DNA of 64,000 nt, from positions 46,934,001-46,998,000 of the forward strand of contig OZ076417.1 of assembly GCA_964187785.1 (NCBI GenBank). Reading direction: 5' to 3'. Under the pieces are notes generated by a model. The model saw only the letters and a list, made by a program, of their open reading frames with translations, ran no database searches and had not been told where the DNA came from. Position numbers and translations under genes: made by a program. Shown piece by piece: positions 11,420-61,297 of this stretch (positions are counted from its first letter, which is position 1; each line of letters starts with the position of its first letter). The stretch is from Amphiscolops sp. MND2022. Its lineage: Eukaryota.

Positions 11420-11466
11420 AAGACTTATTTTACCGCAAAACCAAAATTTTAACCGATCAACCACCA

Positions 11467-32153: not shown

Positions 32154-32179
32154 CGAACTAGCAAGATCTTGCTAGTTCG
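32154..32179. repeat. Perfect 26-bp palindrome CGAACTAGCAAGATCTTGCTAGTTCG (copy at 35640-35665)
   Basis: Read directly; lies near the 3' end of a ~430-bp insertion (~31769-32200). Confidence 0.95.
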
Positions 32180-35100
32180 TTGCGGCATATATATTGTAAT
32201 GAGTTCGACAATACGTCAGATCTGATCTTCGAAGCAAAATATTTCACGATTACCAAGAAAAAAGATGGGGTATTTCTCTGTTGTCTGGCAGCAACAGATG
32301 GAGAAGGCAATTCCCATCACCTATAATAACACCCATCTGTACCGAAAACCAAGTGCTATTTGGGATCCTGATTACACCACAAACTTCAAACCGATTCAGG
32401 CACATTCCCCCCAATGATGACTACAACCCAACATACACCGACCCGGACAGTGGCAGAAATCCCTACTGGGACACCGAACTTTACAACCAGGACTTACTGC
32501 AGTTCCAGCACAATCTTGATGATATTGAACTCTACGAGAGATCAGCGCACGAAAATCTCCAAATGAAAAACAATTCCAAAAGATTTGTGTAACCAAAGAA
32601 TGTGAATATTACTTAGTTTATGTGAAGTTGTAATTACTAGTCCTTGGACCGGTTCCAGCTATTATTTGGAACGTGACACAGTGCTAGTTGGTCAGATTTG
32701 GTTACAACACTAAATTAACCCCTCACATGTAATTTGAAAATCACTCTGTTCACATAGGCTTTTATGTCTCACGTCAGCGCATACCTGAGATTGATGATGC
32801 ATATTTGTAAAACCTTTTACTATTTGTTGACACTCTGAAGAGTTGTTTTGATTGATAGTGACAAACTATTTGTTTGAAGTTGCCTTCAAAAGGTAAAATG
32901 ACCATTCTGAGAACTCCCCGTTGCTTTGATGTTCATCGACGTCGAAGGTCAGGTGACCTTTCAAGTGCACAATAACCAGGATTCATGTGATTTTACTTCA
33001 ATTGATGTAATTATTAAACAATTGATGACTGCAAAATTGTGAGTGTCATTCCTTAAAGGGTTTAAATACCTCCAGTTCCATGAGATTGACACAGTTTTCC
33101 GAACAGCTTTCCGTTTTCAAGACGGTTAATAAAAATTCAATTTCCGATATATTATTTCCAATATCACTATCGGATATGTTTATGCCTCCTACAAGTCAGC
33201 AAAAGGGTAACGCTAGAAAATCAAGAGATGCCGATATGTTATCTGACATTGAAAACGTAGAAATTTGGCTAGGCAGTAATCATCTAGAGAGAGAAAGAAG
33301 CAACTCTGTCCGTAGGCGTGAACGTCCTAGTTACAATGCATTGGTGAACCACGATGTTAATTCTCACTCGAATTCAAGAGATGTTGAGAATGTGGGTTAT
33401 GCTGGAAACGGCCAGAACTGAAGAGAATTTGACTTCAGTAGTGAAATTAATAGGTTTTCTGGGGAACTGAACCAAAGGATCACTCACGAAATGATTGATC
33501 TAATGAGTAGTGTGAGCTCACAAATTCAGAGACCTATAAATGAGGCTATAAAGTCCCTAGCAGAAGACCCGAATGTAGATCTGAAGATGCCCTAAACCGC
33601 AAATTCAGAAGTAATTCGTAAGATGTGCTTCTTAGAGACTCCAATAGAAACGAAGATCTAGAGAATACTCAATACATGGGGACAGGAGACAACGAATCTC
33701 CAAATCCTGTTACCGAGATTCTCAGGGGGCACATCCATCCCACCACGAACGGTACTTAAACGCTCCAATTGCGATTACAATAAATCACTTAATGCGACAT
33801 TACATACTCCAGAACAAAACCCTTCAATGGCCGCACAAGAATCAAACCACAGACTAGCCGATGTACTAATTAATCTGCAGCATCGACCAACAGCCCTACA
33901 ACATCTCACAATCCCCTCAGTCTACTCCAAGTTTGACCTTTTTGAAGATCGTTTCCATACGATGATCAAGATTCAAGAGGAAATGTCAGAGCAGAACTTA
34001 ACCGTTTTCATTCATTTTTCCGCAGAGGAGATCTACAAACTTTTCGAAACATCAACAAGAATAATCAACAAACTCTCGAGGACGTATCAGTCATTTTCAG
34101 GCGCAAATACGTAAAACCAGAATCCCAACTGCCAATCACAAATGGCACCATCTAGTCTTCGACCCCAATACGATGAAATTACCAGACTTCCTCGAAGAGT
34201 TGAGTCAAGGGGCAGAAAAAGCGTTTGAGAGAAAGCTCAAAAAATGATTGACAACCTCCTCTATGCAAAACTGCCACAAAAACTCAAAAGATCACTCAAC
34301 AAGGCCCGTGTTGGGAATGGTTCGTAGGTTGAAATTGTTGCCCATTTTGAGGAGGAAGTGAAGCTTAACGCTCTGGAGGAAGCGGATGACTTGTCAATGG
34401 CAGGAGTGACTTCCTTAACATCTAAACCCAAAAGCCTTTTTCCTATGGACTACTCATCGACACCGTCTGCAACCATTGCAAGGAAAAGCGTCATATGGTC
34501 AAAGACTGCGAGAAACTCAGAAAGAAAAAAGAAAAAGATGCCCAAAAAGGCAATTAAGCTGCAAACTGGAAAGAAAACTTATTCTAAATGTGGAACTTGT
34601 GGCAAAACAAAAAACCCCGAGGAAAAATGTTGGCGAGGTGCAGGCGCGCATCTCGAGCCTAAACACAACAGGCCTGAAGACTCATCGGAGAACAATCTGA
34701 ACTCAAAAGCGCAAAAATCTCAATATAATTCACATCGTCCAGCTCCCAGTCCTCATCACAAGAGGAGAAATCAAAAATTAATTTAGCCCCAACATAACCA
34801 TTAGTATCAGTGCGACACTGTGTCAGATCTAATCCTTCAACCAAAGTTTTCCACAAAAATCAACAAAAACTTAGGGGTATCCCTCTGTTGTCTGGCACCA
34901 ACTCTCATCACATACAATAACACCCATCTATACAAAAACCAATTCCTGGCCAACCAATATGGTACCCTGATCACACAATAAACTTCATTAAAGGATGCCC
35001 AGAAGGGCAAAGCAACTCAGAGGAAATTCTACCCTGTGTGTGGAACTTGTGGCAAGAAAAATCATCCAGAAGACCGATGTTGGCAAGGTGCACATCTCAA

Positions 35101-36129
35101 GCCTAAACGAACTAGGCCTGAAGACACATGGGACATTAATGTGGAATCGAAAGCACCGAAAGCTCACCATACCTCCACATGGTCCAACTCCGAGACCACA
35201 TCAAAAAAAGACGATTCAAAAAACTAATTCTCCAAAACCCCCACCTAGTATCAGCCTGAGTTTGCGTATCCTAATCAAAATCACTAACGTACACACTTTG
35301 CGGAAGTAAATTCCAGGCAAAATGTGTACCAGGTTAGAAAGAAAATGATGAAAGCTTCACAGTGGAAAACAGTCAAGGTAATCACTAGCTTACACACTTT
35401 GATTGTTTTTCACTTTGAAAGTGAATTCCAGTCAAATTGTGTACCAGGTTAAAGTGTAAAACAATCAATTTCCGTCTTCGTGTGTGAAGTGGAAACCAGT
35501 CAAGTTACCTAATTGTAGAGAGTGTAAAGTAGTCATTTACTTTATTTCAATCACTATGCGTAACAAATATCACACAGTGTAACGAGCAAAACTCGTAACG
35601 CGTATCAGAAATAATAACGCGTTTCTATTGGCTGTTAATCGAACTAGCAAGATCTTGCTAGTTCGTTGCGGCATATGTATTGTAATGAGTGCGACAATAC
35701 GTCAGATCTGATCTTCGAAGCAAAATATTTCACGAATACCAACAAAAAATGATGGGGTATTCCTCTGTTGTCTGGCAGCAACAGATGGAGAAGGCAATTC
35801 TCATCACCTATAACAACACCCATCTGTACTGGAAACCAAGTGCTTTTTGGGATCCTGATTACACCACAAACTTCAACCCGATTCAGGCACATTCCCCCCA
35901 ATGATGACTACAACCCAACATACACCGACCCGGACAATGGCAGAAATCCCTACTGGGACACCGAACTTTACAACCAGGACTTACTGCAGTTCCAGCACGT
36001 TCTTGATGATATTGAACTCTACGAGAGATCAGCGCACGAAAATCTCCAAATGAGAAACAATTCCAAAACATTTGTGTAACCAAAGAAGGTGAACCTGACT
36101 CTATACCACTCTCTACCAATATCTACCTA

Positions 36130-42078: not shown

Positions 42079-43808
42079 TATCGCAGGCTGCCGTCCGTTA
42101 CGGATCAAGGATAACTACTTCAGCAATCGGACAAGAAGCCGCAACAGGTACGCTGCGAATATACTAAAACTTTGCCAAGCCTAGAACGAAACTTAATCTA
42201 TCATTTACAAGTACTTATAATATGATTTGATATTTTGTAATTTTTGTCTGTTAACAATTGTTAGATTATTCAGATTGAAATTTGAATTGCTTAGAGCGTT
42301 GGAATGTAAAACAGCTGTATAATTACGATTGCAATGCAAAAGTGAATTACTGCGTAGAAGTACGTAAACGAGTTCAAATGAGCTCCAGTACTTCTACGGC
42401 ATCGAGACTTCCCGGCGAACAAACAACCAATCACAGCTCTTCAAAGATGGACGCAGAAATAATATTCGCCAATCACGGCAACTTGAATGTGCTTTGAAGA
42501 TACTTGATTGTTTCTAGGCAATTGGCCGGTTCCAGTCAGATTCTGTATTGATATCATTCTTCTGCTCATGTTGCTATTACTTCCTTTACTGAGAGCGCAA
42601 TTGTTATTAACGTGATGAAATGCAATGAGGACTTATGTTTGATGTGAAGGTTACTTAGTTCGTCTAATGTTGTACGTACCAGTCCTTGGAGCGGTCCCAG
42701 CTATTATTTGGAACGTGACACAGTGGTAGATAGCCAGATTAGGCTACCACATTAAATAAACCTCTCAAATGTAATTTGAAAATCCCGCTATTCGTATAGC
42801 CTTTTATCTCTCACGCGTCAGCGCGTACCTGAGCTTGATGGTGCATATTTGTAATACCTTTTACTTTTTGTTGACTCTCTGAGAAGTTGTTTTGATTGAT
42901 AGTTATAAGCAATTGGTTTGAAATTACTTTCAAAATGTGATATGCCCATTCAGAGAACCCCCTGTTGCTTTGATGTTCTTTGACGTTGAACGTCAGGTGA
43001 CCTTTCAGGAATGCTATAACCAGAATTCATGTAATTATTCTTCAGATGATATACTTATTAGACAATTGATGATATGTAAAAAAAATGCGAGTTTCATGGC
43101 TTAAGGGGTTTATATACCTCCAACTCCTGGAGCTTGACACAGTTTGCCGAACTAATCAGCGTTCAAGACGCATATTAAAAATTAAATTTCCCATAAAATA
43201 ATTCAAATACCAAAATCGGTCATTCTTCATGCCTGCTACAAAAAAGCAAAAGGGTAAAGCTGAATAATCAAGAGAATGTGATAAGTTATCAGACATTGAA
43301 ACCCAGGACATAATGCTAGGAAGTATTCATCTAGAGAGAGGAGAAGTAAGCGAACTCAACAACTCTGTCCGTAGGCCTGAAAGTCCTAGTTACAATGCAA
43401 TGGTGTATCACGATGTGAATTCTCACTCTAATTCTAGAGAGGATGAGATTAGGGGTTATGCCGGAAACGGCCAGAATTCAAGAGAAGTTGACTTCAGTAG
43501 TGAAACTAATAGGTTGTCTGGGGAACTGAACCAAAGGATCTCTCAAGAAAAGAATGATCTAATGAGTAGTGTGAGCTCATATATTCAGAGAGCCATAAGT
43601 GAGGCTTTAAACGAACAAGTCTTGCCTCACATTAAAGCTACTTTTAGACCCGGACAAGGACAAGTACCTAATAGGAGATGGGGAATCCCGAGCAGAAGAC
43701 CGAAATGTAGATCTGAAGGAGCCCTAAACCGCAAATTCAGAAGCAGTTCGAAAGATGAGCTTCTTTGGGACTTCAATTGAAACGAGGATCTAGAGAATAT
43801 TCTTTACA
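42079..43808 (+). repeat. 3' LTR of element B (~1.73 kb)
   Basis: Homologous to 28552-30190 including TATATA (~43110) and the Gag N-terminal reading frame (ATG ~43229; ORF 43313-43780); followed by TSD TGCAA. Confidence 0.78.
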
Positions 43809-44675
43809 TGCAACATCACAGACCGGATTATCGCAACGCTTTATTTGGCCAGTTGAAAGTTTCATTCTAGCCGGGTTTGTCTCACTACTCAGCATGCTAT
43901 CCCAATACCTGCCAAAACAGAATTGAAAAAGAAAAGCCGTCGCGTGAACGAATACAACGAAAAAGACGAAAACATAGTAAAAAAAAACTACAGTGCGTGA
44001 GCGCACTCATTGACAACTCGATTGCAATTGTGCTTTTGGCCACCGTCAGTGTTGAATGCCGCGAAAAAGGCGAATATGGAAATTCAAAACTTCCAACTAT
44101 TCAGTGCCCACGGAAGCCCCCAGCTTACGGGCTCGGCGGACTTTTGCCAACTCTTTAGGTAATAAAATTGTATTACCATGTTGTTTAAATTGTATTACCA
44201 TGCTGTTTTGCCCTTTTTTGTATCATTTCAATTCCTCCACCTTGTTAGCATTGTAGGCGTCGTTACAAAATACATCTTGAATCTCAGAATAATAAAATGA
44301 ATCTCAAATATGGCGCCTATCAAAATCGGACCAACATTTGCTTGCTGTTCATGAAGTTGTTCATTAGTCTTCAAAGCTTGTCATACAAAAACAAAACTTT
44401 GGCCAAAAGTGAAAGTCAATTACGTCATCTTCAAGTCACAAAGTTGGAAAAATTTGATGAAGTGTTCATTGATATGATGAAAAATTTGATTTTGTAAATT
44501 TTATCCATTCTGCGTTCTTTTCCGTTCTTATTTGCATTTGCTGATAAAATTAAAGTTGAAATAAACATATCATGTTTCAGCGGTCATTCTATTTTATTTG
44601 AGATTTTTTTAAAAAACATTATCATACGTTTTCTGGCGTGCCGTATACAAAACATATACGGGGTGGACAGTCTAC

Positions 44676-45125
44676 TTAATTTACTTTCCAGCTTTTGTTC
44701 GAGGGCTTTCTCGTGAGAGCAAGTGACAATTCCAATACATGCAAGTTGTTACGACTATTCATCGGAGTTGTTTTAGAGTTAGTCGCAGTTTGTGTTTTGA
44801 CTGGGGTAGATGTTCTAGTTGCAGAGATGTTTTCCTGGTCCGAATCGGAATCTTGGATGTTTGAACTAATTGGACGTTTTTTACTCACAGGTGCTATGAG
44901 TTTAAGCATTTCCTTTTGGTTTTCAGCGAGTATTTTTGTCAAGTCAGACATAATCTCTTTCCTTAGAGTTGTCTTTAATTCTTCTAAATTCTCAGGCTCG
45001 AGTCTAGGGTTTTTACTAGAACTAGCTATCAGGTTTCCAGTAGAATTGTTCTCAGTTAAAGAAGCTTCGAAATCTCCTGACACTAACTCAGCTACAGCTT
45101 TCCTCTTCTGGCTTCTGGTAGTCAT
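44676..45125 (-). other. LTR-encoded copy of the Gag N-terminus (126 codons) running 23 codons into flanking DNA
   Basis: MTTRSQKRK...TPMNSR, almost identical to the start of ORF 57846-59324, then diverges at the LTR end. Confidence 0.9.
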
Positions 45126-47006
45126 TTTTTAATGTTAGAAAAAACGTTTCTTCGGCAATAGGTGAATTCTTCGAAGACGATTTTGTTCAACGTTGAAACA
45201 ACGAAACAGTTTAAGTTTATTACAACTTGCAAACTCAACTAACTCACTTTACATGCCTTGTCTAAGTATATATACCTTCTTAGCGTCATTTGTTCCTCAT
45301 CTAAAAATTCCTAGGAATCGCAAAAATCAGGTTTGTTCATCAAAAGACGCTAATGATTCAGATTATTTCAGCTCGGCGTCATAAATTCAGGTATTGAGAT
45401 TCCTAGTTGCGTCACTATTCCGTAAAACCTTGTTGAAATCATTTTTGTTCAGATAACCCATTTCCTGTTTGAACTTCAAAATTGCGGCAAAATAGAAGTC
45501 TAGCTTACATTTTCATCAGCGTAGGCACGCCGGCGTGATCAATTAGTCAGCGTTCAAGTTGGGAAATTGAGATTCGAAGCAAAAGAATGACTCGCAAAAA
45601 TTGTAGCGAAATTGAAACGAGGCAAAAGGAACTTTGGACTAAGGATATTTGAATATTATTGAGGAACAAGCAACGCTAAGAAAAACATAATGATGACTAA
45701 TCAATTAATTTTGTAAACTGAACAACTGCACCAACAGTAAACTCAACTTTGACCTATACGTGGCCATAACGTAACAAGTACGAATTGCAAAGTACAAATA
45801 GATAGGAAAAATACATTTGCAGGCAATAATTATTCTGCACTCGATTGGACTTCGTATATGAATAAATAGAGCAGACATCCCGCAACAATAGCACTTGGTT
45901 TGGGTTTCGACGTTGACCTTACGTTACGTTCTGTGAAACATTTTAATGATAAACAACTAATCACTGAATACATAAAACTCTTAATGTAACGTAAGGTATA
46001 CGTGACTCGAGGAACTATTGTAATAGCATCGTTACTCTTCGATCATTGTTTTAGCCTCTTTTTACAGTACAACCTTTTACATGTGGACTTGTTTCCAGAA
46101 CCCTTTAATTGCGTCGATTCAGAAAAATCCTTATTTGATTTCGGTTTAAACTAATGCTTCATCGCTATTATTTTACGAATTGCTCCGTAAATGCTCCGTA
46201 CGTATTAAGATTGGTTATAGCTGAGCGGCGGAATACAATTTTACAATCCGCTCCGTAAGCGCTCCGTACGTATTAAGATTGGTTATAGCTAAGCAGCAGC
46301 AGCAGGCGGAGCGAAAACGGAGAGCGTAGGTGATACTATTCTCTTTTCTTAGCTAGTGAGCGTTGCTAGAGGCAACCAAGTTTAATTCTACTGGTACCGG
46401 CGCGGATAATTCTGCCAACAAACGACGCTATTGGTCCGTAAAAATAGAAACGCCCGTCACCAGCTTAGTTGAGTGACGCTGTCATAACGTTGTAAACATT
46501 TACTTAAAACCGCTTGGTTGCGGTATTAAGTGGATATTTAACAACTACTTTAATATTGGAATACATTTCCACTATATTTTGTATGTTCTTTCATTTTAGA
46601 TTGTATGGACTCCGTTGGGATCTCGGAGTTGAATATTGTTTTGAATGTTTTTATTTCAGTGTGGAGCAGGAAAAATGATCCCATTTGCAAAATTATTTAG
46701 TATTTAGATTGGAATGGAAAACTCAGAAGATGAAACCGGAAATAAAACGGCGTTGCGTGTGAAAACATTAGACCGGAAGTTTTAGCTAGTTTAAAGTCAT
46801 TTCTGAAAATATTCCGTAACGCTTACGTTAGATTCTGTATTCGGAAAATTATCTGCAATCGATTTAGCTGTACTGTAAGTGGAATTTAGATTAGTTTAAG
46901 ATTAGATTAGTTTAATAGAGTTTACCTCGGCCTTGTCCTCGGCCAATTCCGAAACCAGGTATCCCGCTGCAGCAGCTATAATCCCGACCGGGAGCGGGTC
47001 GTGACA
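44747..47006 (-). repeat. 3' LTR of element C (2260 bp)
   Basis: About 14 substitutions and 1 indel counted by eye versus 58946-61204. Confidence 0.97.
46182..46290. repeat. ~41-bp direct repeat (68-bp period) with CCAAT boxes in the LTR U3; copy at ~60381-60489
   Basis: GCTCCGTAA..GCTCCGTACGTATTAAGATTGGTTATAGCT occurs twice; GATTGG is CCAATC on the element strand. Confidence 0.85.
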
Positions 47007-47781
47007 GGGCCCCCCTTGAAGCAAGAGACAAGGGTATAGCTCGGCAATGGGGGATTTCTTTCCTGATGATGACAGGGGGACGGCCGTTGAAAATCCGCGT
47101 GCCGCGACCACGTCCTCTTCCCGATGTCATTTTGGTTATGAGTCTCTCTTCTTCCTCCATTTCTCGGAGCTCCTGTTCTCTTCGCGCCGACTCAATAGGG
47201 CATATTTCTGGCGGTTTAGTAGGGTCGCTTAACGCACATCTGCATTGCTCTCTTTTGGTCGGAGGGGGGGCATTCTCTTTTGCTCCGTAGTGAGTGCGTC
47301 CACGACTGACTGTTGCGAAGAACTGCCGGTCTTCTATGTCTAAACCATGTAGAGCGTCCAATTCTGCTAGCGAAGGCTCATTCAAGTCATTCAGCTTGAC
47401 TGTATTTGGAGCTTTTTCATTTCCCAGCTGGGGAATGTTTGCCTTTTCTTTTAGAACTGGTGTTGGTTTTGTTTGGGGCTGGCTCGGCGGCGTGTCCGGT
47501 TCTTCGTAGAAGTCGGTATCTGAGTTAGGGTTTACTGCTGGCGGTAGATTAAAGCTTACTCTCCCTAGCTTTTTCTTTTTGCTGGGGGTAGGGCCGCGCC
47601 TTTTCGGAGAACAGTCAGACTCGGACGTTGAATTTGTTTCAGCTTCGCTCCCACGAAATACTTCCGTGGACGAGTCACTAAGAGTGCTGACCGTATTGAG
47701 GGGTAGTGTCTTCAATGGCGTGCTGCAACGGTTATTATCTTCGTCGGAAGATATATCTATCACCAACGAGTATCCGTTCAT
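46912..47781 (-). CDS. ORF3 of element C: 289-aa low-complexity protein of unknown function, reading through the PPT into the 3' LTR
   Basis: Uninterrupted ATG-to-stop ORF; PSKKKK basic cluster, GRVSF, acidic/Pro-rich middle, GRGRGRG and GRGQGRG; the last ~31 codons are LTR-encoded. Confidence 0.7.
   Translation of the reverse strand: MNGYSLVIDISSDEDNNRCSTPLKTLPLNTVSTLSDSSTEVFRGSEAETNSTSESDCSPKRRGPTPSKKKKLGRVSFNLPPAVNPNSDTDFYEEPDTPPSQPQTKPTPVLKEKANIPQLGNEKAPNTVKLNDLNEPSLAELDALHGLDIEDRQFFATVSRGRTHYGAKENAPPPTKREQCRCALSDPTKPPEICPIESARREQELREMEEEERLITKMTSGRGRGRGTRIFNGRPPVIIRKEIPHCRAIPLSLASRGALSRPAPGRDYSCCSGIPGFGIGRGQGRGKLY
47010..47017 (-). promoter_or_regulatory. Polypurine tract of element C
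   Basis: AAGGGGGG followed by CCC and then the LTR TGTCAC on the minus strand. Confidence 0.85.
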
Positions 47782-47833
47782 GATTGCAGAGATTAAATTT
47801 TGTAGGATTTTGGCTTATGTCTTCTTTGACTAG

Positions 47834-48356
47834 GTCACGGAGAATTAGTTTGGCAAAGGATGCTGGTCAAGCTTTTATGAAAATTGGACGACAAATGAAC
47901 GTTTCAAATTCTTTTCCTTCGTAATTTTTAACGAAATTCTATTGGTCGGTTTTTCCGTTTTCGTTCCGGTGCGTCTCGAGTTGAAAGAAACGAGTTCTTT
48001 CTTACTGCGTTGTGATTGGTCGAAATAATTGAGGAAAACTTCTAATTCTAGTAGCCGTCCTCTTTTTGGTTAATGGCGTAATGACGTCACACAATTTCAT
48101 AGGTGAATTACGCCTGTGTTCCGTGATCTCCTGATGATTTTCCTAATTCTTCTTTAGCATTTCTTGGTGGATTTTTATCCATCTCTAGGATCTTTGGAAA
48201 CGTTTTGTTCCGTCAATGCCTTAATAGGCTTTTATTGGGGTTGAAGATTAGGGAATTTCCATTTGTATAGGAGTGATATTGCTAATTTCCTTTCACTTAG
48301 TTACGTCCGCGTAACGTAATTCTACCTCTTTTTGATTTTTCTCCTTTTTTCTTCAG
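47834..48356. promoter_or_regulatory. Putative internal bidirectional promoter between ORF3 (-) and the antisense cargo gene (+)
   Basis: ORF-poor spacer between divergent genes; ATTGGTCG at 47941 and 48015 (inverted CCAAT); TGACGTCA at 48082-48089. Confidence 0.45.
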
Positions 48357-48757
48357 ATTGCTGTGAAAATCTTTGCTGCTGTTTCCTCTCCATGGATGAC
48401 GATACTGCTCCGCCCCAAGGCACTATCACTGGATTTGTCAGTGGCAATGAGACCAACTTTTGTTATACTGACGATGACGTTGTCTTTTCGGAGGTAGGAG
48501 ACGGCTGTTACTTCTTCAGGTTGGTAAAATCTTTCTGACTTTCGTGGGTAATTGGACTGTTGTTTTGGTGATCAGCCTTTTCAGTCTTACCCGAATACCT
48601 GACGCGTCAAACCAGATCTTGATTTTCAGTAACTCAACCTGGCGCTTCAACTGCAGTTGTTTCCGTAGCCACTGCGGGATTTCCTTCGACAGCGACTACT
48701 GTTCTGCCATCAGTTTCCACTTTTTTATCTGCCAAGCCCACTAGTGCTGTTAACGAA

Positions 48758-51700
48758 ATGTTAACTACTGTACTGACTAGTGCTGGGCCCGCCGATTCTC
48801 TTCCTGTGGACTCTTCTCCTGTCATCGTTGGTCCTAATACACGGGTTGTTGCTGCGAGTAGCGATAGTGAGTCTCAAGAAGGTGAGACAGATCCCCCCGT
48901 CAATAGAAAAACCCGTTGGTATATTCGTTTTTGGTATTATGTTTCTGACAGGGTGATCGAAATTGTTTTTGGTGTTGTAGATGTGAGGGATATTGAGACG
49001 CAAGGGCCTTCCAACATATGTGTGACGCCATCGAAACGGGCGAAGAAGGTTGTCATCGCTCCGCCATCGCCTCCTCCTCTGATGCACGCTTCTACCGGAT
49101 GGCAAAGTAAGTTCTGTTATTGTTATTATTTCTTTCTGCATACTTTGAATTGAGGGGAGTATCAGTGTCGAATTGGTTTGGTTTCTTCGAGGACATCTTA
49201 ATTTCGGTATTCTTTTTCATTGGTTGTTGATGTTGTGTAGGTCACGATGATGAGCAGTTATATGGTTCCGGTGGAGTGACGTTAAGTCCCCAGGACGTAA
49301 TGCGATTGGGTCAGCAACTTGTGGAAGAGGTGAAGGAGAGTACTGCGTTGGCGATTCAAACCGGTTAGTGTTCGCGTTTTTCGCTGTAATCGGGTATTGC
49401 TTCTGTTTTTTCCTTAGGGTCGTCGTTCATTTTCAGTGTAGCGTGGATTTTCTTTATCACTTTCCTATGTTGTTTTGTAGAGTTGCAAGAGTTCAGTGGG
49501 AGGGTGGAGAAGCGTCTAGCCAAGCGAACAGTGAAGACGTACGGGAATCGCAACACATTGCATCGTCGTATGTTGAGTCGCCATCCTGCATTTCCTGATT
49601 TCGTGACAGGTTCTACGACCGGTGAGGGAACTCACTTCCACTGTCGGGTATGCAAGCGTGATGTGGCCATGAAAGCTCAGGGCTCTGGAGAATTTAGTAG
49701 ACATTTCCGCTCTGATGCGCACTGGTTTAAAGACGTTACTTATCGCGTCCATATGGGTCTTCAGGTGCTCAATAGATTGATGGAACCGATGGAGTTGTCA
49801 GCAAGTCAACTGGCAGATTATAAGTCGCGGCCATTTTGTGATCTGAGCGGGGAGTATCCGTTCCCTGAAGATCTGCTGCCTAAGCATTCGAAAGCGGAGT
49901 CGAACGTGCCTTACATGACCTTGGTTTCTTGCTTTTGTGAATTCTTGCGGAATGGTGGTGATTTCAATTATCTTCGTCGTCTGTGGGGCCACTTCTGCGC
50001 GACATTGGGCGACCAAGAACCTTGCTTTCCTTTACGATGGAGCCGTTCGGAGACTGTGGTGAGTTTTATTATTGTTGTTACTTGTTTTGTCGTATATCCG
50101 GGTGAGAGAAAAACAAAAAGGGAATAGGGGGGGGTATGTCTGTTGTAGTTATTGAGAAAGTAGGGTTTCTTTTGTGTTTCAGTCCTTCCTTTGTCGGGGA
50201 TTGGCTCGGCGAGTTCTTCGTCTGATGGTGAGTGACGTCAAATCTTTTGAAGAGTACGGGATGCACTTTGAGAGGTCTGGGAACGTGGAACATTGCTATG
50301 TTCTTTGTTGGGATGGGCTCAATTTGAAGAAGATTTGTGTGGGCGGTCAGTCTTTGGATCAAAAGATGCCCGAACCCGAGTTGCTTCCGTTGGCGCGTGT
50401 AGCGAACTGTCTGGAAGGACGACAATTACCGGTGTCAGTTCTCGGCGCTAGTCCTTCGCTCATTCGCGTGCTAGACACGAACAGGACGGATGATCGTCGT
50501 TTTCTGTCATGGCAGTCGTTTGATGAGGAGGTGTTTCTCCAGTGTTTCCGTCAGTCTCATCAGGACATTTTTGGAATGGTTGAGGTGACGACTGCATTGG
50601 AGTATGTGATTCATCGATTGAAAGGGGCTCTCTACGAGGATTGGACAGAAGACAGACCTCTTCTTCGAGCGTGCATACGGGAAGGCTCCGTTGCATTCTG
50701 CAACCTTCGTGAGATCCTGTCCGATTTGATTGAGCTGTGGCCTTCCATCCGTCCATACATTCGTTACACTGGACATCCTCATTTTAAGAGTGTTGCTGAT
50801 AGGGTGAGTACTATCGTATTATTGGTTGATTTCAATTTTGTGTTATTCTTTTGTTCCCCTCTGTGCTTTTCCTGAGCTATATATGATTTTGGAATTAAGG
50901 TATAGTTTATCTATTTTAGCTGCGCGGCACAGACTTTGAGTTAATTTCCGATAGTCTCATCGTCTATCGTTTTGGCTTCCTTCGACTGCTTTTAGACTCC
51001 TGTAAGTACGGTGGTTTTTCGTTAGAATTGTTCTTTTTCGACTGTTTCTGATTGTGGTAGCGTATTGACTGATGTTTCTTGTCATTGTGGGTGTGCCATT
51101 GCATCTGGTTTCTATCGGCTGTGGCGTCTTGATCAAAGTTTTCACTTCTTCACGATAATTCTTGTGTTTAGATTACTTCAATTTTGAGAAATTGCTTCAA
51201 TGCCGGAGAGATTACGCATTTCATGGGTACGGTGAGGTCTGCAACTTCGTCTACTGTCTGCTGATGCGAACCCGTAAGCTGGCTGATTTGCCTGGTATCC
51301 ATGAGTGGGAAAGTTATATGGATGTGTCAAAACTCTCCTCGTTCGACGTCATACCCATGGAAGAATTCTTGATGGACAGTGATTTTGGTCGCGAATTGGT
51401 TGCTGTCAAGACGGGTGAGATGCGGGAATTCCGAGTTAAATGCCGCGAGTGTATCGATCGGCTTGTGTCTCTGATTCTTGCCAGCACAGCTGTGACTTCC
51501 GGTGTTTCGCGTGGGCTTTATGCTTTCTGTCCAGAGATTATGTTGGGAGGCGACGATCACCATATCTTCGAGCTGTTTGGCTCTCTTTGTGATTTATTCA
51601 GGTCCTGCCGCGTGATGTCTTCAGACGGTTTGAATGCTGTTGCTGCTGAATTCAAAAGTTATGTGATAGAGAAACGCAGGCATTACGAGGATGCGACATG

Positions 51701-52436
51701 CGCTGCAAGTGATATTCCTGACTTAGTTCAGTTTCTGCTGCGGGATTTTGCCTTTCAATCTCGGACTCATGTGTTTCGGCTGTTTAAAATATGCTGTCTG
51801 GTAGTTGGATTGCCAGATAGTAGCCTCCCTGCGGTTACTATTGATCTGGGTGGTAGTGCGTTGAGTCCGGCGATGGTTCAGGATTGTGTATTGATGGTGC
51901 AGTCCCACGTTGTCAATCCGAGTTTCAATCCTCGATTATTTTTTTCGGCGTCCTTACTTGTTGCAGTCCGGGAAGCTATTGCAGAGGCAGGTATCTTCTT
52001 CAGAGTTGCTGATTTTGACATGTGGAAGGATTTTTGCTCTGGTGATATGGAGTCTTTCGTTGGGCATTATAGGTCCTTGTATCATAAGTATTTGTTGGGG
52101 CGACGGAAGGATTACGACACTTTCTATGTGGAAAGCAACAAGGCTAATCGGCGTTCCCGCGAGATCCAATATTCAAGTTCGACTGAGGCCGGAAGTGCTG
52201 CGAGTTCTGTCGTCGGTTCTAAGAAGGCGTCATCAAAGATTGCTTCGTCAAAGTCTGTGAAAGCAAATGCGTCTACTGCTCGTTCATCGGCAAAAGATGT
52301 GAACAGGGAAGATGGAGCTGTTGCGAAAAAGAGTGGCGGAGGCAGTACGTCTAGAAGATCAAAGAAGGGTAAGGGCAGTGATTCTGATGATCCTGATGTA
52401 GTCCACAATTTGAAAAGGAGATCTTCTAAGAATTAA
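48758..52436 (+). CDS. Spliced antisense cargo gene of element C (~970 aa): S/T/P-rich N-terminus, C2H2 zinc finger, hAT-transposase-like body, basic Ser-rich tail
   Basis: Exons 48758-48881, 48981-49106, 49241-49363, 49481-50058, 50183-50803, 50920-51001, 51172-52436. Six GT-AG introns of 99, 134, 117, 124, 116 and 170 bp; all phases match, giving a 2919-nt open frame. The 99-bp intron is in-frame and stop-free, so less certain. The true 5' end may lie upstream (acceptor at 48629; ATG at 48392). Confidence 0.85.
49642..49722 (+). other. C-x2-C-x16-H-x5-H zinc finger in the cargo protein
   Basis: CRVCKRDVAMKAQGSGEFSRHFRSDAH. Confidence 0.85.
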
Positions 52437-52894
52437 TGGACAGTTGTTTATGGATTGATTTCCTGATGAATTGTATCTTCTGATGTACCTGTTATTTGTA
52501 TTCTTTGTTTTATGGTCTGATTGATATCTGTAAATCACGCTAGTTGTTTGTTATAGTTACGTAGTTTTAGTAGAGTGCAAAAATTGATGTAGTCATTCCG
52601 GTTCGGTTTGACATGCTGATTCTTTTGTCTAGTCCTGAGTTTGTCGTAGTTCTCCCGTAGTGACTGAGTCGAGCATTCTGAAGTCAGGATTGATGTTAGG
52701 ACGTGGATTAGGTCTCAAATTGTATCGGCCTACTTTCCTAGGATTATATCCAACGACTATAGGCGGTAGTTCGGGTGTTTTGGGAGGGCTTCCTATAGGC
52801 GGCGGTGCAAAAATATAGGGGTTGTCGCTGACGTCCAAGTTAAATGACGTTATATTGTCGGAGGAAGTTTTATCTTCTGCCGTATTTTCATTTG

Positions 52895-53020
52895 TGGCTG
52901 TTTGAGCCACGTCATTGGCTGTTATACTTTCGCTTGTGGTTGTTTGAACCACGTCATTTTCCTCTGTAATTTCATTTGTGGTTGTTTTAACCACATCATT
53001 TTCCGTTGTAATTTCGTCGC
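52895..53020. repeat. Three ~42-bp (14-aa) tandem units in the integrase C-terminal tail
   Basis: ITTENDVVKTTTNE / ITEENDVVQTTTSE / SITANDVAQT. Confidence 0.75.
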
Positions 53021-56000
53021 GTCCTGTTGTGTCTGTGATTTCTGTAACTGTGGCTTCTTCTGCGGCGTTTTCGGTGTTGTTTCCGAACAGAACTTCTCCG
53101 AATTCAGTTTCCCAAGCTTGCGCGTACCAATTATTGTGGGTTGTTTTAACCTCTGGGTCTGGAAGGTAATCTTCCCTTCTGACTGTTACGTCAGGTACTC
53201 GTTGATTGGGCGCATATAGCCTTAGGCGAATTCTATGGAGGGTTTGAGTATACCTAGTTCCCGTGCGACGTACGACGTAGTTGTTGTTCGAGAGTTTTTG
53301 ACTACTATGTAGGGTCCAGTCCAAATGCAATCTTTAAAGGCAAATTTCATTGACTGATTGTCTGCTTTCGGATTGAGGACGTAGCAGTAATCGTTGACTT
53401 TGAGCGGTGTAGCCGATGCTTTCTTGTCATAGTATTGTTTGTATTTGAGGTAAGAGTGCATTAGATTCTCTTTTGCAGCTTGGTGTATTTTGGCTATTTG
53501 CTTCTGTAGTTGGTCCGTTATTTCTTCGTTGTTATCTTTTTCCCAGTTAGGTTTCAATCCAAGTTTTATGTCCAAAATGTTGTACGGAATGCGTCCATGA
53601 AACACTGTTGTCGGTGAACATCCTAGGCTTTCATGGTAGCTTGTGTTGTAATTCATGACTGCAATTTGGACGTATTTGTGCCACATAGAGCGTCTTTCTC
53701 CCGTTGAAATTTTTAGGGAGGTTTTCAAAGAGGCATGAGTCCTTTCTAGAATGCCAATTGTTTGAGCGTGTTTCGTCGATGCGTGGCTTATCCGTATATC
53801 CAGTGTTTGTGTTATTTGATTGACTACTTCTGACCTGAATTGTGATCCTTTATCCGTTAGAATGACGGTCGGCAGGTAGCAGTGTCGTGTCATGACGTCT
53901 ATTATGCATCGTGCGACTGTTTTGGCTGTCATGTCCTGTGTCGGGTAAGCGAAAAGGTAACGCGAAAAAACATCCATCATCGTTATGATGTGTTGGTATC
54001 CATTTGAGGAAGGTAGATTTGGTAGGATGTCTACTTCTAGGCAGTCTTCTGGTCCCATTGTGAATTCAGTGTTGCTTAGCATTTTTGGGCGTATTTGTCT
54101 TGTGTCAATTCTTTTATTGGCAATGCAGTCTTGACAGCTGGTTACCCAAGCTCTGATTTTACGTGCAAGACCTGGGAAGTAGTATTTCGCTCTGCATTCT
54201 TGTATCATTTTTGTGATTCCTGGGTGTTTATTTGTTTTTCCATGTAGAGTGGCCAAGAGTTCTGGGACTAGGTGTTTCGGAATTATAATTTGATTATGGG
54301 TGACTGATCTGTCTTCTCCATAGTATTTCCGCATCAGAACTCCATCTTTCATTATGATTCTTTCTTCGTGGCGTAATAGGTTTCGTCCTCGTGGTTCAGT
54401 TTTGAGAAGGTGTTTGTCATATTTTTCGTGTGAGATCCGTTGTTTCAGTGCTTTGAGGAGAGGGTCTGCATCTTGCTCGTTTCTGATCCGTGCATTTTCC
54501 TTAATTGCACCGAAGGAGTAGACTGCGGAGTTGAGTGGTATCTTGATGACTTCGGTTACCTTTGTTGATAGTTCTTTCTCATGTTCGTCTAGGGCGCGTC
54601 GCTTGCTGAGTGCTTTTCGGGCAAAGATTTCTTGTTCAGATTCATCTTCTTCATCAGGTAGGAAGAAAAGTTGTTCTTCGTCAGCTACATCTGATGATTG
54701 TAGATTGACCTCAATTGGGGACGTTAGGATGTCGTCTCGTAGTTTAAGTTGTACCTTTTCTTTCGGTGTAAGTTCAAGTCTTGAAAGAAAATCTGCTGCT
54801 GTGTTTTGGGAGCCTGCTACGTGCATAATTCGAAACTTGAACTGTAATACATAGTCGCAGGCATTCCAGAGTGCAGGGGGTGTCGTTTTGGTCTGGAAGA
54901 ATCTCGTTACTGAGCGGTTGTCTGTTAAGACCAGGGTTGGAATTGTTGCTTCCCATAGTATGTTGCTGTATTCGAGGAATGCATGGTAGATTGCTAAGAA
55001 TTCCTTGCTGTAGATAGACATTTTCAGTTGTGCAGGTGAAAAAACTCGTGATCCGAACGCTACTGGTGCGAAGGTTTTCCGTTTGGAGAGTATTTTGCGT
55101 TCATCGTTCTCCTCAATCATGAGGGCGTAGCCTGACGCGCGAAAGCTTGCGTCCGTCATTAGAACGTACTGTTTTCCTGCTATAGGCTGTCTGAGTGCGA
55201 GTCCACAAGCTTCCGCTAAACTGGCGTTGATTTCCTTAAAGTTATCGACAAGTTCTTCTGAAATTCTGATCTTGGAGTCTGCTTTAAGAAGTTCGTACAT
55301 GCCGATGAGTTTTTCTGATAAGCGCGGTATGTAGTTGCGGTAATAGTTAACAAAGCCAATGTATTTTTGAACTTGTTTTTTGGATTTGGGGAAGCGGACT
55401 TTGGAGAGGAAATTTTTGACTTTTTGATCTTGCGGGGCTACTCCGTCGGGGGTGATGGTTCGGCCAAGAAATTCGATTTGGGTTACTCCAAAATGACATT
55501 TTTCGATGGTTAGTTATAGTCCTGCTTTTCTAATGCATTTGAAGACTGCTCTGATGTTTTTTATGAGCTGTTCCGTTGTGTTTGCGGCAATGCCAATGTC
55601 ATCTACGTATTGTGCACATTGGTCGGCTTTGATGACTGAGTCCAGATACTCGCGCATGAAGCTCGAAAAAGCTGATAGGGCTCTGCTTAGTCCTTGTGCC
55701 AGGCGACGGTAGGCGAACGTCCTACTAGCAAAATTAAAAGCAAGTAACTCTACTGACCTTTGGTCTGCCATTTGAAGGCAGTGATACGCCTGGGAGCAGT
55801 CAAGCTTGCAGAATAGTTTTTTCCCTGCTAGGTGTTGTGCCGCATCTGAGAGGGTGCTGACAGGGTGGTTGTTGTTGATGTAGTCATCTGCTATGAGTGC
55901 GTTGATTTTGCGTAGATCCACCAGCAGTCTCAGTTTGCCGTTGGGTTTCCGTTGTGCAAATATAGGACTGGCGTACTTGGAGAAGGGGAGTGTCGTGATG

Positions 56001-57869
56001 ATACCGTATCGGTGCATGAGGGCCAGTTCTACAGTCAGATCTTCTTTGAGGTTGATGGGTACGGGTAGGCTTTGCGTGTAGACTGGTTTGTCGTCTTGTG
56101 GTGTTAGGCTGACTTTGAATTGTGTGTTCATTCCTATGTCTAGCCGGTGTCGAGCGAAGATGTCATTAAATTCGACAATGGTGTCCTCAAGGTTCTCACG
56201 GTCTTTGCCCGCAATTAGTGAGTCTGTCCAATTGAACATTGATAGAAATTTGTTGCGAGACTCTTCGTTTTCGGTTGGGTCAAGTTTTTCTAGTTCGGCA
56301 AGGTCTCGCAGTTCTTTCAAGATTCGCTTTTGTATGGGCGAATGTTCTTGTTCGTTGCCTGGGTGTTCTGGGGTCGGAAACCAGAATTTTTCTTCATTGT
56401 CTTCGGGCCGTTCTACTTGCATTAGTGCGTTGATGTACGTGACCACATCGTCATGGTCATTGAGGAGATTCAGGGCGGCAATGTCAACCGGGCGGATCAT
56501 CTTCGTTTCTTCGGGTTTCAGGATTTGCAGTTCAGCCATTTTGGTGTCGGTGGCTATTGTGTATGGGAAATATGTGGTGTTGGCGATTTTAATTGGGAGC
56601 TTTTTATCTCTGGTTGTTGTAATCGCTGGGGCTACTATTACCTTCGCGCATTCGTCGAATTGTGGTAGGGGTTGTATTGTACCCGTTATTGAGTGTTCGG
56701 TACTCACAGGGATTGTTGCGTAGATGATTCGGGTAGAGTGCGCTGGAATTGTGTGTTTGGCTTCGGTCTTTATCATGATGGGCTTGGGATTGCACTTTTG
56801 TCTTTCGTCTGTGAGCGCCATTGTGATTTGGATTTTGGGAAAGTCGATGGTTCCTTGTGCCGTGTCGAGAATTGCGGCATGCTTGCGTAGGAACGCTAAT
56901 CCGATTATGGGAAATGACGTTTGATTCATGATGATGAATGTTTCTTCAAAGGTGTAATCGCCTATTTTGAAACGTAGGGTGTACGTGGCGAGTGGTTGTT
57001 CTAATTCAGCATTGGCATATTGCACTTTGAAAGGGGGTGGGGGTGCTTTATTGACGATGCACTGACTAGCGTGCTGTCGGAGTCTTTCAGCGTCTCTTTC
57101 ACTAATAGCGTTAATGTACGCACCTGAGTCAACTAAGGCGTCGATTTTGACCATGTTGAATTCGACTGGTAGAAAAAGCATTCGTTTTTTCTTCTTGAGG
57201 GCGATGGAAGACATTAACGGAATGTAGTCGTCATCTTTGTCATGTTGAATGAATTCTTTGATGGCATCTAGATCTTCGGGTAATTTTGAGGGACATTCCG
57301 TGATTTCTACGTCGTCATTCATCAGTGTTGTGACGGGCGCAATTTTTGGAGAGGTTACTGGAGGGTCGACATTCTCTCGTGTTGTTCGCCGTTGTTGTGC
57401 TCATATTGTTTTGTCTTCAATGCAGATGATATTTTCGGCATCTATCGGTGTGGAGGTGATGGTGGCGGGTACTGTTGGGGATGGTGTTGTTCGTTTTAAA
57501 ATTGGCGATGGTGGTGATGGTAGGTCCATGATTTCTGTGGATTGAGCTTGGGGGTTTGAGACTTGTATTTTGAAGGAGAGTTTGTTAGTATCATAAATGG
57601 TTGGTTCGTCCCAAGGATCGCATCTGTAGTCTCTATCGTAAATGTAGATACGCTCGGTTTTTGATTCCGGCAAGGGTCTCTTGAGTGTTGCATAGTTATC
57701 CGGTGATTCAGTTATCCATTGGGGTAGTGGCGTTGGATCGTCTGGGTGTCTGGCATTGTGTCGGAGGATCATGCCTACATTCCAACGACGTTGCCAGTCC
57801 TGAGTTGGTTCCTCGTTACACTCTGTGAAAAAGTCTTCCTCATACCTATTTGGGGGGTCTTCGATGGTG

Positions 57870-57925
57870 TACGCCCCCGCGTCTACTTTTTCCCCGAAGC
57901 GTAGGCGCGGCGACTTCAGTTTTTT
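57870..57925 (-). promoter_or_regulatory. Putative -1 programmed ribosomal frameshift signal (A_AAA_AAC at 57925-57919, then TGA and a GC-rich stem)
   Basis: The -1 frame is open from the heptamer into the pol ORF at 57772; downstream CCGCG-C-CTAC can pair with GTAG-A-CGCGG; the same heptamer-plus-stop occurs in element B. Confidence 0.75.
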
Positions 57926-59324
57926 GCTTGGGACGACGTTGTAGGTACGGGTTGTTCGTCAATCTTGTTTGTTGGGATATTGAACTCACGTTTGCGTTTT
58001 CTGGGGTCGTTTGCCGCATTGGCTCCGTCCCAGCAATTTTCGGTTTTGTGCATTTCCCACAAGTATCGCATTTGGGTTTAGTTGTATCTGTTTGTTTGGT
58101 GTCTGTGGTACCTGTTTTTGTGGCGTAGTACCTGTCCTTACGGAGGCGACTGCATTGTGCCTTGTAATGGCCATATTTCCCACAGTGGAAACAGTAACCT
58201 CTCTGTTGTTGTTCTCTCTTATCATCCGCCACTGCTGTGTCCACAGTGTTGAGAGGGACTAGGGTGGTTTCATCGGGCGCTCCTAGTCCGTTGAGGCGCA
58301 TTTCGCGTTCAAGGTGTAAAACAATATCGTTATAGGGTTTGTCTTCTAGGTAAGCTCTATTAAGGATCTTTTTTACGTGATCCGGCATTTTAGCGTATAT
58401 GGCTTTGTAGATGAACTTCTGGGCTTCTGAGCCAAACGCTTCCTTTGCGGTTTTTTGTAACTCATTAGGAAATTCGTGGAGTTTTTGTTTAGTGGGGTCA
58501 AAATGCAGCGCATCCCACTCGCATCTCGCTTTAGCGGATGATTGGAAATCGCCAAAGCGACGTTTGAATGCTGTTATGACTTCTTCTAGGTTGTCTTTTT
58601 TAGTGTCGTCTAGATTACAATACGCTTGTAGCGCGTTTCCTCGTAGGAGTGAATGAAAGTAGTTGATCTTTTGTATCTCGGTTAGGTGAGGGTACATTTT
58701 GATATTGTTTCTAAAGAGGTCCTCGAAAAGTTCGAATTTCTCGGAATTACCGTCAAAGGCTGGAAGCGAAGCTGTCAAAGCTTTCGGCATCGGGGGTAGA
58801 TTGGCAGTTGGGAATGTCTGCGGGTGTGGTGCGAACAGGATCTTAGATGTAGAAGGACGGTCTTTTGTTTGTTCATTGGATGCACGTTGTTGTTTCAATC
58901 TTTTCGTGGGTTGGTTGGTAGAGTCATTGAGGACTCCTGTCACCATGTCACGACTATTCATCGGAGTTGTTTTAGAGTTAGTCGCAGTTTGTGTTTTGAC
59001 TGGGGTAGATGTTCTAGTTGCAGAGATGTTTTCCTGGTCCGAATCGGAATCTTGGATGTTTGAACTAATTGGACGTTTTTTACTCACAGGTGCTATGAGT
59101 TTAAGCATTTCCTTTTGGTTTTCAGCGAGTGTTTTTGTCAAGTCAAACATAATCTCTTTCCTTAAAGTTGTCTTTAATTCTTCTAAATTCTCAGGCTCGA
59201 GTCTAGGGTTTTTACTAGAACTAGCTATCAGGTTTCCAGTAGAATTGTTCTCAGTTAAAGAAGCTTCGAAATCTCCTGACACTAACTCAGCTACAGCTTT
59301 CCTCTTCTGGCTTCTGGTAGTCAT
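57916..59324 (-). CDS. gag: gag of element C, starting inside the 5' LTR; 1-nt frameshift near 58053
   Basis: ATG 59324; reads across the LTR end and PBS (CGT GAC ATG GTG ACA GGA); LPAFDGNSEKFELFEDLF capsid-like region; CFHCGKYGHYKAQC knuckle; restoring one A at 58053-58055 gives a second knuckle CDTCGKMHKTENCW and the stop ...AKN* at 57916. Confidence 0.9.
58933..58945 (-). promoter_or_regulatory. PBS of element C (TGGTGACAGGAGT), probably tRNA-Leu type
   Basis: Directly follows the LTR terminal GACA; from recollection, resembles the tRNA-Leu(CAG) PBS TGGTGTCAGGAGT with one mismatch. Confidence 0.75.
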
Positions 59325-61204
59325 TTTTTAATGTTAGAAAAAACGTTTCTTCGGCAATATGTGAATTCTTCGAAGACGATTTTGTTCAACGTTGAAACAA
59401 CGAAACAGTTTAAGTTTATTACAACTTGCAAACTCAACTAACTAACTTTACATGCCTTGTCTAAGTATATATACCTTCTTGGCGTCATTTGTTCCTCATC
59501 TAAAAATTCCTAGGAATCGCAAAAATCAGGTTTGTTCATCAAAAGACGCTAATGGTTCAGATTATTTCAGCTCGGCGTCATAAATTCAGGTATTGAGATT
59601 CCTAGTTGCGTCACTATTCCGTAAAACCTTGTTGAAATCATTTTTGTTCAGATAACCCATTTCCTGTTTGAACTTCAAAATTGCGGCAAAATAGAAGTCT
59701 AGCTTACATTTTCATCAGCGTAGGCACGCCGGCGTGATCAATTAGTCAGCGTTCAAGTTGGGAAATTGATATTCGAAGCAAAAGAATGACTCGCAAAAAT
59801 TGTAGCGAAATTGAAACGAGGCAAAAGGAACTTTGGACTAAGGATATTTGAATATTATTGAGGAACAAGCAACGCTAAGAAAAACATAATGATGACTAAT
59901 CAATTAATTTTGTAAACTGAACAACTGCACCAACAGTAAACTCAACTTTGACCTATACGTGGCCATAACGTAACAAGTACGAATTGCAAAGTACAAATAG
60001 ATAGGAAAAATACATTTGCAGGCAATAATTATTCTGCACTCGATTGGACTTCGTATATGAATAAATAGAGCAGACATCCCGCAACAATAGCACTTGGTTT
60101 GGGTTTCGACGTTGACCTTACGTTACGTTCTGTGAAACATTTTAATGATAAACAACTAATCACTGAATACATAAAACTCTTAATGTAACGTAAGGTATAC
60201 GTGATTCGAGGAACTATTGTAATAGCATCGTTACTCTTCGATCATTGTTTTAGCCTCTTTTTACAGTACAACCTTTTACATGTGGACTTGATTCCAGAAC
60301 CCTTTAAGTGCGTCGATTCAGAAAAATCCTTATTTGATTTCGGTTTAAACTAATGCTTCATCGCTATTATTTTACGAATTGCTCCGTAAATGCTCCGTAC
60401 GTATTAAGATTGGTTATAGCTGAGCGGCGGAATACAATTTTACAATCCGCTCCGTAAGCGCTCCGTACGTATTAAGATTGGTTATAGCTAAGCAGCAGCA
60501 GCAGGCGGAGCGAAAACGGGAGCGTAGGCGATACTATTCTCTTTTCTTAGCTAGTGAGCGTTGCTAGAGGCAACCAAGTTTAATTCTACTGGTACCGCCG
60601 CGGATAATTCTGCCAACAAACGACGCTATTGGTCCGTAAAAATAGAAACGCCCGTCACCAGCTTAGTTGAGTGACGCTGTCATAACGTTGTAAACATTTA
60701 CTTAAAACCGCTTGGTTGCGGTATTAAGTGGATATTTAACAACTACTTTAATATTGGAATACATTTCCACTATATTTTGTATGTTCTTTCATTTTAGATT
60801 GTATGGACTCCGTTGGGATCTCGGAGTTGAATATTGTTTTGAATGTTTTTATTTCAGTGTGGAGCAGGAAAAATGATCCCATTTGCAAAATTATTTAGTA
60901 TTTAGATTGGAATGGAAAACTCAGAAGATGAAACCGGAAATAAAACGGCGTTGCGTGTGAAAACATTAGACCGGAAGTTTTAGCTAGTTTAAAGTCATTT
61001 CTGAAAATATTCCGTAACGCTTACGTTAGATTCTGTATTCGGAAAATTATCTGCAATCGATTTAGCTGTACTGTAAGTGGAATTTAGATTAGTTTAAGAT
61101 TAGATTAGTTTAATAGAGTTTACCTCGGCCTTGTCCTCGGCCAATTCCGAAACCAGGTATCCCGCTGCAGCAGCTATAATCCCGACCGGGAGCGGGTCGT
61201 GACA
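58946..61204 (-). repeat. 5' LTR of element C (2259 bp): TATA 59466-59473, AATAAA 59415-59420, gag ATG 59324
   Basis: Near-identical to 44747-47006; motif order on the minus strand is TATATATA, AATAAA, ATG, LTR end. Confidence 0.97.
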
Positions 61205-61297
61205 CAAGTGTCTAACAATTTAGAATAGGGGGAACCGATCCCAATTCCCGGAAAACACTAGGAGTAGTAAGCATAATGATCCTCCAAGAAAAAGTTC

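Follow-up and report, generated by a model that had tools for sequence, protein, structure and literature searches.

A probable seven-intron accessory gene antisense to gag-pol in a Ty3/gypsy-type LTR retrotransposon

Structure of the antisense gene

The stretch analysed here is a 64,000-nt window of contig OZ076417.1 from Amphiscolops sp. MND2022, and all coordinates are positions in this window. The window contains a complete Ty3/gypsy-type long terminal repeat (LTR) retrotransposon of 16458 bp (44747-61204, - strand), recognised by its LTRs, its target duplication and the order of its Pfam domains. Between the end of pol (52632) and the 3' LTR (47006), on the strand opposite to gag-pol, lies an accessory gene (48392-52436, + strand, stop codon included) with eight exons and seven GT-AG introns, which is defined by splice sites, phases and conservation in relatives. 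An earlier note on this DNA had placed an intron-bearing gene antisense inside a retrotransposon, and the LTRs and target-site duplication that bound the region bear this out.

The eight exons, all on the + strand, are at 48392-48519, 48630-48881, 48981-49106, 49241-49363, 49481-50058, 50183-50803, 50920-51001 and 51172-52436. The introns between them measure 110, 99, 134, 117, 124, 116 and 170 nt, 870 nt in total. Searches, alignments and folding were all carried out exon by exon, full-length figures are sums of exon lengths. Nine relatives were fetched with their contexts, all from three public ENA assemblies, and eight loci entered the splice-site comparison; the loci are referred to by number (L001, L002 and so on) where they need to be told apart.

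The earlier note started the gene at 48630 and gave it six introns summing to 760 nt. These six introns stand, and so does their sum. The junctions 49106/49241, 49363/49481, 50058/50183, 50803/50920 and 51001/51172 are exact, with GT after each exon and AG before the next, and the sixth, 48881/48981 (GTGAGA...TAG), is also correct. The extent and the count do not stand, since alignment with L002 and L001 reveals a further start exon upstream (48392-48519), followed by an intron at 48520-48629. The ATG of the start exon is conserved in the window, L002 and L001, as is its donor, CAG/GTTGGT, and this 110-nt first intron ends at the acceptor that opens the exon at 48630.

The length of the intron at 48882-48980 is a multiple of three, and read-through is possible in principle in the window copy. 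The homologue in L002 is 108 nt long and holds both in-frame stops of the exon-2 region, while the sequences on either side of it are open and in phase. As the L002 stops fall inside the homologous segment, this is an intron common to the relatives.

Each exon is open only in the frame demanded by the splice phases, the other two frames hold 2-32 stops. Two of the codons split by junctions were examined and neither is a stop. The junctions are in phase, as had been claimed, and about 3.1 kb is kept open across seven phase-compatible junctions. Counting exon lengths from the in-frame ATG at 48758 gives 972 codons and a stop, in agreement with the product of about 970 amino acids proposed before; in intact copies the predicted product is about 1050 amino acids long. 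The stop codon of the gene and the end of pol are convergent and 195 nt apart.

The AT skew of the + strand is strongly negative (-0.15 to -0.32) over 46000-60000, that is over the whole element including the antisense gene. The coding strand of the gene is T-rich and A-poor (exons 30% T, 22% A). It mirrors the A-rich bias of the element's sense strand, as expected after long residence in a retroelement.

Conservation of the gene and its introns

The last-exon open reading frame (ORF, 424 amino acids) has relatives in 515 representative clusters at E<=1e-3 among 1.84 billion proteins, 65 of them at E<=1e-30, and the same kind of protein search finds 125 relatives of the zinc-finger exon described below. 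All database relatives of the gene are exon-sized proteins, which arose when eukaryotic contigs of metagenome assemblies were annotated in prokaryote style. Callers that work ORF by ORF split the gene into unrelated 'hypothetical proteins', and present annotations do not show the family as a gene at all.

The six loci with long flanks (L001-L003 and L006-L008, all from ERZ25074608) share one layout without exception (6/6): LTR, gag (DUF1759) and pol are on one strand, and the antisense gene, convergent with pol, is on the other. Two short contigs from ERZ1742291 and ERZ23487912 also carry the antisense gene. A further locus, L009, is a sister copy with 99.5% identity across 6 kb; homology stops at the LTR edge and the flanks differ, from which L009 is read as a separate insertion belonging to one young subfamily with the window copy. 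The window is very probably from the species that gave assembly ERZ25074608.

The three large exons can be aligned along their whole length with those of the relatives, at 34-97% protein identity and with the frame changing between them. AG or GT occurs exactly at the position predicted by the extrapolated protein alignment in 34 of 37 cases across the eight loci, where about 1/16 is expected per dinucleotide; this agreement is far beyond chance. The extended motifs are also alike in the relatives, with GT[AGT]AGT donors and T-rich acceptors ending in TAG or CAG. The micro-exon between exons 6 and 8 is exactly 82 nt long, with strong splice sites, in six of seven loci, and just 9-12 of its 27 residues are kept among loci. 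Introns of the window and L002 are 80-86% identical. The GT-AG sites and frames that the earlier note looked for in other copies are hence found to be conserved down to 34% protein identity.

Selection and mosaic history

The antisense gene is under purifying selection as a protein. Compared with L002 over all exons it has a synonymous divergence (dS) of 0.38, a nonsynonymous divergence (dN) of 0.053 and a dN/dS of 0.14. Individual exons range from 0.05 to 0.36, with the zinc-finger exon at 0.05. The overall value is similar to those of gag (0.10), pol (0.05-0.11) and a second accessory ORF, encoded in sense (0.12). Differences between lineages build up in copies that replicate on, so the constraint argues that the gene matters for propagation of the element.

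Synonymous divergence between the window and L001 is very uneven along the element. In pol dS is 0.23-0.33, in gag it is 1.2 and in the sense accessory ORF 1.9, while in the antisense exons synonymous sites are saturated (proportion of synonymous differences 0.76-0.81) and the LTRs are about 76% identical. Against L002 the divergence is even, with a dS of 0.17-0.32 for pol and 0.38 for the antisense gene. Unequal synonymous divergence is not attributable to protein constraint, the modules therefore have different histories. This is the case for pol and the antisense gene, and the mosaic pattern is as expected from recombination or module exchange between co-existing lineages.

The protein product

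Exon 5 encodes a zinc-finger-like module, C-x2-C-x16-H-x5-H, at 49633-49755 (+). Among the aligned sequences C54 is present in 37/38, C57 in 36/37, H74 in 34/39, H80 in 37/39 and H90 in 38/39; taken over 39 sequences these residues, together with H135, are kept in 87-97%. The model of this exon has a mean predicted local distance difference test score (pLDDT) of 84, and the predicted fold consists of two short strands followed by helices, bearing C54, C57, H74 and H80. The only Pfam match is weak and below threshold, to zf-C2H2_ZN292 (best E=0.0096, in 5/39 members). Foldseek lists BED- and U1/matrin-type fingers for the model, all at E>1 and not significant.

The model of the last exon contains a confidently predicted all-alpha domain at residues 8-210 (pLDDT about 85-97) with a long helix, followed by a tail that is predicted to be disordered and is basic and rich in Lys, Ser and Arg. 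The N-terminal exons are rich in Ser, Thr, Ala and Pro and strongly variable between lineages. On these features, the product may be a nuclear nucleic-acid-binding protein.

The enclosing retrotransposon

The 5' LTR (58946-61204, -) and the 3' LTR (44747-47006, -) were located by direct-repeat comparison and by their TG..CA ends. They are 2260 bp each and 99.3% identical, and a 5-bp target duplication, ACTTG, is present at 44742-44746 and 61205-61209. A primer-binding-site-like stretch (58929-58945, -), noted on inspection of the sequence, adjoins the 5' LTR and has TGG as its first bases; a purine-rich tract (~47007-47018) immediately precedes the 3' LTR. A tRNA gene search found no tRNA genes in the 64-kb window, and no Rfam families were found in it.

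Pfam domains in three ORFs on the - strand follow the order gag, protease, reverse transcriptase (RT), RNase H and integrase, which is the Ty3/gypsy order with integrase after RT. Both the zinc-binding and the core domain of integrase are matched on this strand, and the single intact 1714-amino-acid pol of L001 has the same domain order.

The gag ORF (57846-59324, -) is open and encodes 492 amino acids, with matches to DUF1759 (1.1e-9) and, weakly, to Retrotrans_gag. Its protein is 81-88% identical to gag of L001 and L002. As listed, the ORF begins about 370-380 nt within the 5' LTR, in the window and L001 alike (in L001, gag is at 16761-18170 and the LTR at 17802-20138). Translation of gag either begins inside the LTR, crossing the primer-binding region, or begins at a downstream ATG.

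The pol region (52632-57772, -), whose bounds come from comparison with L001 pol, encodes protease, RT, RNase H and integrase in Pfam and is broken. Counted against the intact L001 pol it has one frameshift and two in-frame stops, its protein is 96% identical to that of L001, with a dN/dS of 0.06-0.11. The database relatives of pol are all ENA proteins without a name. The copy in the window is young yet damaged. Three tandem 42-nt units (69-77% identical) occur in the 3' end of pol at 52872-53016; on the - strand they encode a repeated 14-residue motif in the C-terminal region of integrase.

The upstream region and the sense accessory ORF

A second accessory ORF of 289 amino acids (46912-47781, -), conserved in L001 and L002, lies on the same strand as gag-pol and overlaps the 3' LTR by 95 nt. 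Over its full length it shares 63% of its residues with its counterpart in L001, and it is 56% identical to that in L002; it has 87 relatives and a dN/dS of 0.12 in the comparison with L001. It matches no Pfam family. Either a sub-genomic spliced RNA or an internal promoter would express it.

The start codons of the two divergent accessory genes are separated by a spacer of 610 nt, in which no TATA box is found. Within the spacer is a conserved non-coding core (47865-48100, no strand assigned), picked out by its identity to L001 and by its motifs. The window and L001 share 84-94% of its sequence, and for this pair the coding sequences on either side are saturated. ATTGG, which is CCAAT on the opposite strand, occurs at 47883, 47941 and 48015, and a TGACGTCA motif is present at 48082. 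This core is a candidate internal TATA-less promoter, possibly bidirectional. An acceptor-like site directly upstream of the start codon of the antisense gene is also conserved, and there may be an additional untranslated exon upstream of that start.

Interpretation and alternatives

Few introns are expected in retroelements, since their genome goes through a stage of spliced or packaged RNA. The introns of the antisense gene would outlast this passage through RNA thanks to their orientation: being antisense to the genomic RNA they would go unrecognised and unspliced there, and would be copied intact in each round of reverse transcription. The earlier note had proposed that the orientation lets introns persist, and this is supported; the argument rests on established knowledge and is the mirror image of intron-based retrotransposition reporters (PMC12786077). 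As the introns are retained in genomic RNA copies, the gene could be read only from integrated DNA. Expression from integrated DNA, by a transcription unit of its own, had also been proposed, and appears a sound conclusion because of the purifying selection on the gene (dN/dS 0.14) and the conserved non-coding block upstream.

Taken as a whole, the locus is very probably a genuine antisense accessory gene of a Ty3/gypsy-type lineage, read from integrated DNA and encoding a product of about 1050 amino acids. A separate RNA polymerase II transcript would begin at a promoter within the element, for which the CCAAT-rich, TATA-less core at 47865-48100 is the likeliest candidate, and would run along the + strand towards pol and be spliced seven times. 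Its product would combine a disordered N-terminus rich in Ser, Thr, Ala and Pro, a C2H2-like zinc finger, all-alpha domains and a basic disordered tail. Such a protein would most likely bind nucleic acids in the nucleus and work in trans to the advantage of the element family, either activating transcription or counteracting silencing by the host.

Several observations weigh against this explanation. The window copy carries one frameshift in the antisense gene relative to sister copies, which puts the conserved ATG out of phase with the long frame; in L001, L002 and L009 the start exon is in phase with the remainder. Neither AATAAA nor an AATAAA-like hexamer occurs within 660 nt after the stop codon. 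The promoter-candidate core is detectable in the closest lineages only (L001, L002 and L009) and not in L003 or L006-L008. Transcription, splicing and translation of the gene are predictions from sequence.

The function assigned to the protein rests on weak features. No exon of the gene matches a Pfam family even at E=10, and none passes in 72 relatives (39+33). Sequence and profile searches of the PDB give no relative of the protein, Foldseek comparison of both exon models with the PDB gives nothing significant, and the last-exon model has no significant fold match in BFVD. When Joint Genome Institute (JGI) metagenome contigs were scanned with the alignment of the zinc-finger exon, no relative came up, and all relatives of the gene are from three ENA assemblies.

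Capture of genes by LTR retrotransposons is documented (PMC7264820), and the protein is an orphan that cannot be linked to any known function of retroelements. The gene could on these grounds be a host gene that was transduced once and is carried as a passenger useless to the element, its conservation reflecting recent copying. We regard this as improbable. The gene is present in every sampled lineage, including copies that are just 34-45% identical, its between-lineage dN/dS is in the range of gag and pol, and the intron positions are retained throughout. In addition, no copy lies outside an element among the six long contexts.

Rather less probable is an origin from a different mobile element that nested in an ancestral retrotransposon, such as a DNA transposon whose transposase gene had introns, and whose remnant has been co-amplified since. 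No terminal inverted repeats were found on either side of the region. Pfam at E=10 detects no domain of a transposase, of the RNase H-like kind or of any other mobile element, the fold searches give no match, and selection has been maintained. What speaks for a nested element is that nested insertions are common and that the zinc-finger model has a faint likeness to BED-type fingers of hAT-derived proteins, which in Foldseek is at E>1 and not significant.

It is also quite improbable, slightly more so than a nested element, that the + strand yields only a spliced non-coding antisense RNA, regulating the element via double-stranded or small RNAs, and that the frames are incidental. Spliced non-coding RNAs from the antisense strand have been well documented for HeT-A, TART, L1 and Arabidopsis Copia (PMC2615633; 10.1101/2024.04.02.587720), and the convergence of the gene on pol makes sense/antisense overlap likely. 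An RNA of this kind does not account for the frame of about 3.1 kb over seven phase-compatible junctions, a dN/dS of 0.05-0.36 in every exon, the conserved Cys and His residues or the confident fold predictions. An RNA role could accompany that of the protein.

Short ORFs and GT/AG pairs are frequent, and this is all that recommends a chance arrangement, which is refuted by the conservation of sites and phases in relatives, the 82-nt micro-exon and the dN/dS, and is given almost no weight.

If the locus is a genuine accessory gene, as we favour, its product could further be a trans-acting factor peculiar to its lineage, either an activator or an anti-silencer, with specificity for sequences of its own element. 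Such a factor would diverge in step with the LTR, gag and the sense ORF, and recombination between co-existing lineages would reshuffle it against the conserved pol. We consider this extension speculative and on balance unlikely. If true, the two-gene accessory cassette with its internal bidirectional promoter would be a retrotransposon counterpart of retroviral regulatory genes, intron-bearing by virtue of orientation.

VANC proteins of Arabidopsis VANDAL (Mutator-like) DNA transposons are anti-silencing accessory proteins that diverge fast from lineage to lineage while the enzyme gene is conserved. They offer a possible analogue of how the antisense gene might work; this is pure analogy, VANC belongs to a DNA transposon.

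Comparison with known antisense genes

Extra ORFs placed in antisense between pol and the 3' LTR have been described as a class. They are found in plant Ty3/gypsy elements of the Tat/Retand group, including Grande of maize (gene23), RIRE2 of rice and Retand of Silene, and in Boty of Botrytis, and in the plant class their products are proteins with TRP28 or PMD domains (PMC7264820, PMC11963269, PMC4408406). For Grande gene23, a promoter of its own and a product located in the nucleus are reported (PMC7264820, PMC11963269, PMC4408406). As in the aORF-3R class, the coding region described here lies antisense between pol and the 3' LTR and is present in most copies, it is not a one-off.

The gene resembles the Tat/Retand antisense ORFs in place and orientation and in its presence in most or all copies and in related lineages, and the element resembles theirs in being long, with a long region from pol to the 3' LTR. 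Unlike them, the gene has seven conserved introns and neither a TRP28 (PF04195; Transposase_28) nor a PMD domain in any exon at E=10 or in the 39+33 relatives. The present element also has a DUF1759 gag and a second, divergent sense ORF. In the literature compared, no mention of introns in antisense extra ORFs was met, although older work, for example a 2011 survey covering additional ORFs of plant Ty3/gypsy elements, may be missed. Place and orientation are thus already known. What is new is the set of seven conserved introns, the orphan zinc-finger protein, the paired sense ORF and the module exchange; a multi-intron antisense gene for an orphan zinc-finger protein is unusual in such an element.

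Antisense genes are also known in deltaretroviruses. The HBZ gene of one of them, human T-cell leukaemia virus type 1 (HTLV-1), has a spliced form with one intron, its transcript starts in the 3' LTR and its product is a nuclear regulatory protein with a bZIP domain. By description the gene in the window is similar, a minus-strand protein gene near the 3' LTR of a reverse-transcribing element that would be transcribed from integrated DNA. Unlike HBZ it has seven introns, neither a bZIP nor another Pfam domain, and a candidate promoter that is internal. HBZ is also mentioned as an antisense gene in one of the papers on antisense ORFs (PMC11963269).

Spliced antisense RNAs are known for HeT-A, TART, L1 and Arabidopsis Ty1/Copia and are reported as non-coding (PMC2615633; 10.1101/2024.04.02.587720). 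They are alike in that introns of the antisense strand persist and are used there, and differ from the present gene, whose exons are under purifying selection as protein and form a long phase-compatible frame. In retrotransposition reporters the intron is lost only if it is sense to the element RNA (PMC12786077). The reporters are an engineered tool with the mirrored logic, the natural arrangement keeps its introns as they are antisense.

A large seven-intron gene would in this way have been kept for a long time inside a retroelement purely through its orientation. Constraint as tight as that on gag and pol speaks for a dependence of some LTR retrotransposons on regulatory proteins that the integrated copy supplies, a situation shared with complex retroviruses. 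With its clear gene structure, many natural copies at graded divergence and exchange of modules, the family makes the role of antisense extra ORFs approachable by comparison and expression mapping.

Other repeats in the window

Outside the element there are 19 further ORFs, which have no Pfam family or carry the domains of another retrotransposon. A compact second gypsy-type element at 11187-17106 has 221-bp LTRs that are 100% identical and one open ORF of 1577 amino acids with protease, RT, RNase H and integrase. This element appears very young and lacks an antisense gene. Fragments of a third gypsy-type pol, covering RT, RNase H and the integrase zinc finger, occur at 6952-9542, where a run of N at 9243-9442 interrupts them. 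The ORFs of another repeat, a unit of about 3.49 kb, match no Pfam family; this unit occurs in tandem at 28689-36044, with copies 95-98% identical, and a third copy, 78-89% identical, is found 10-13.5 kb further on at 42216-43810.

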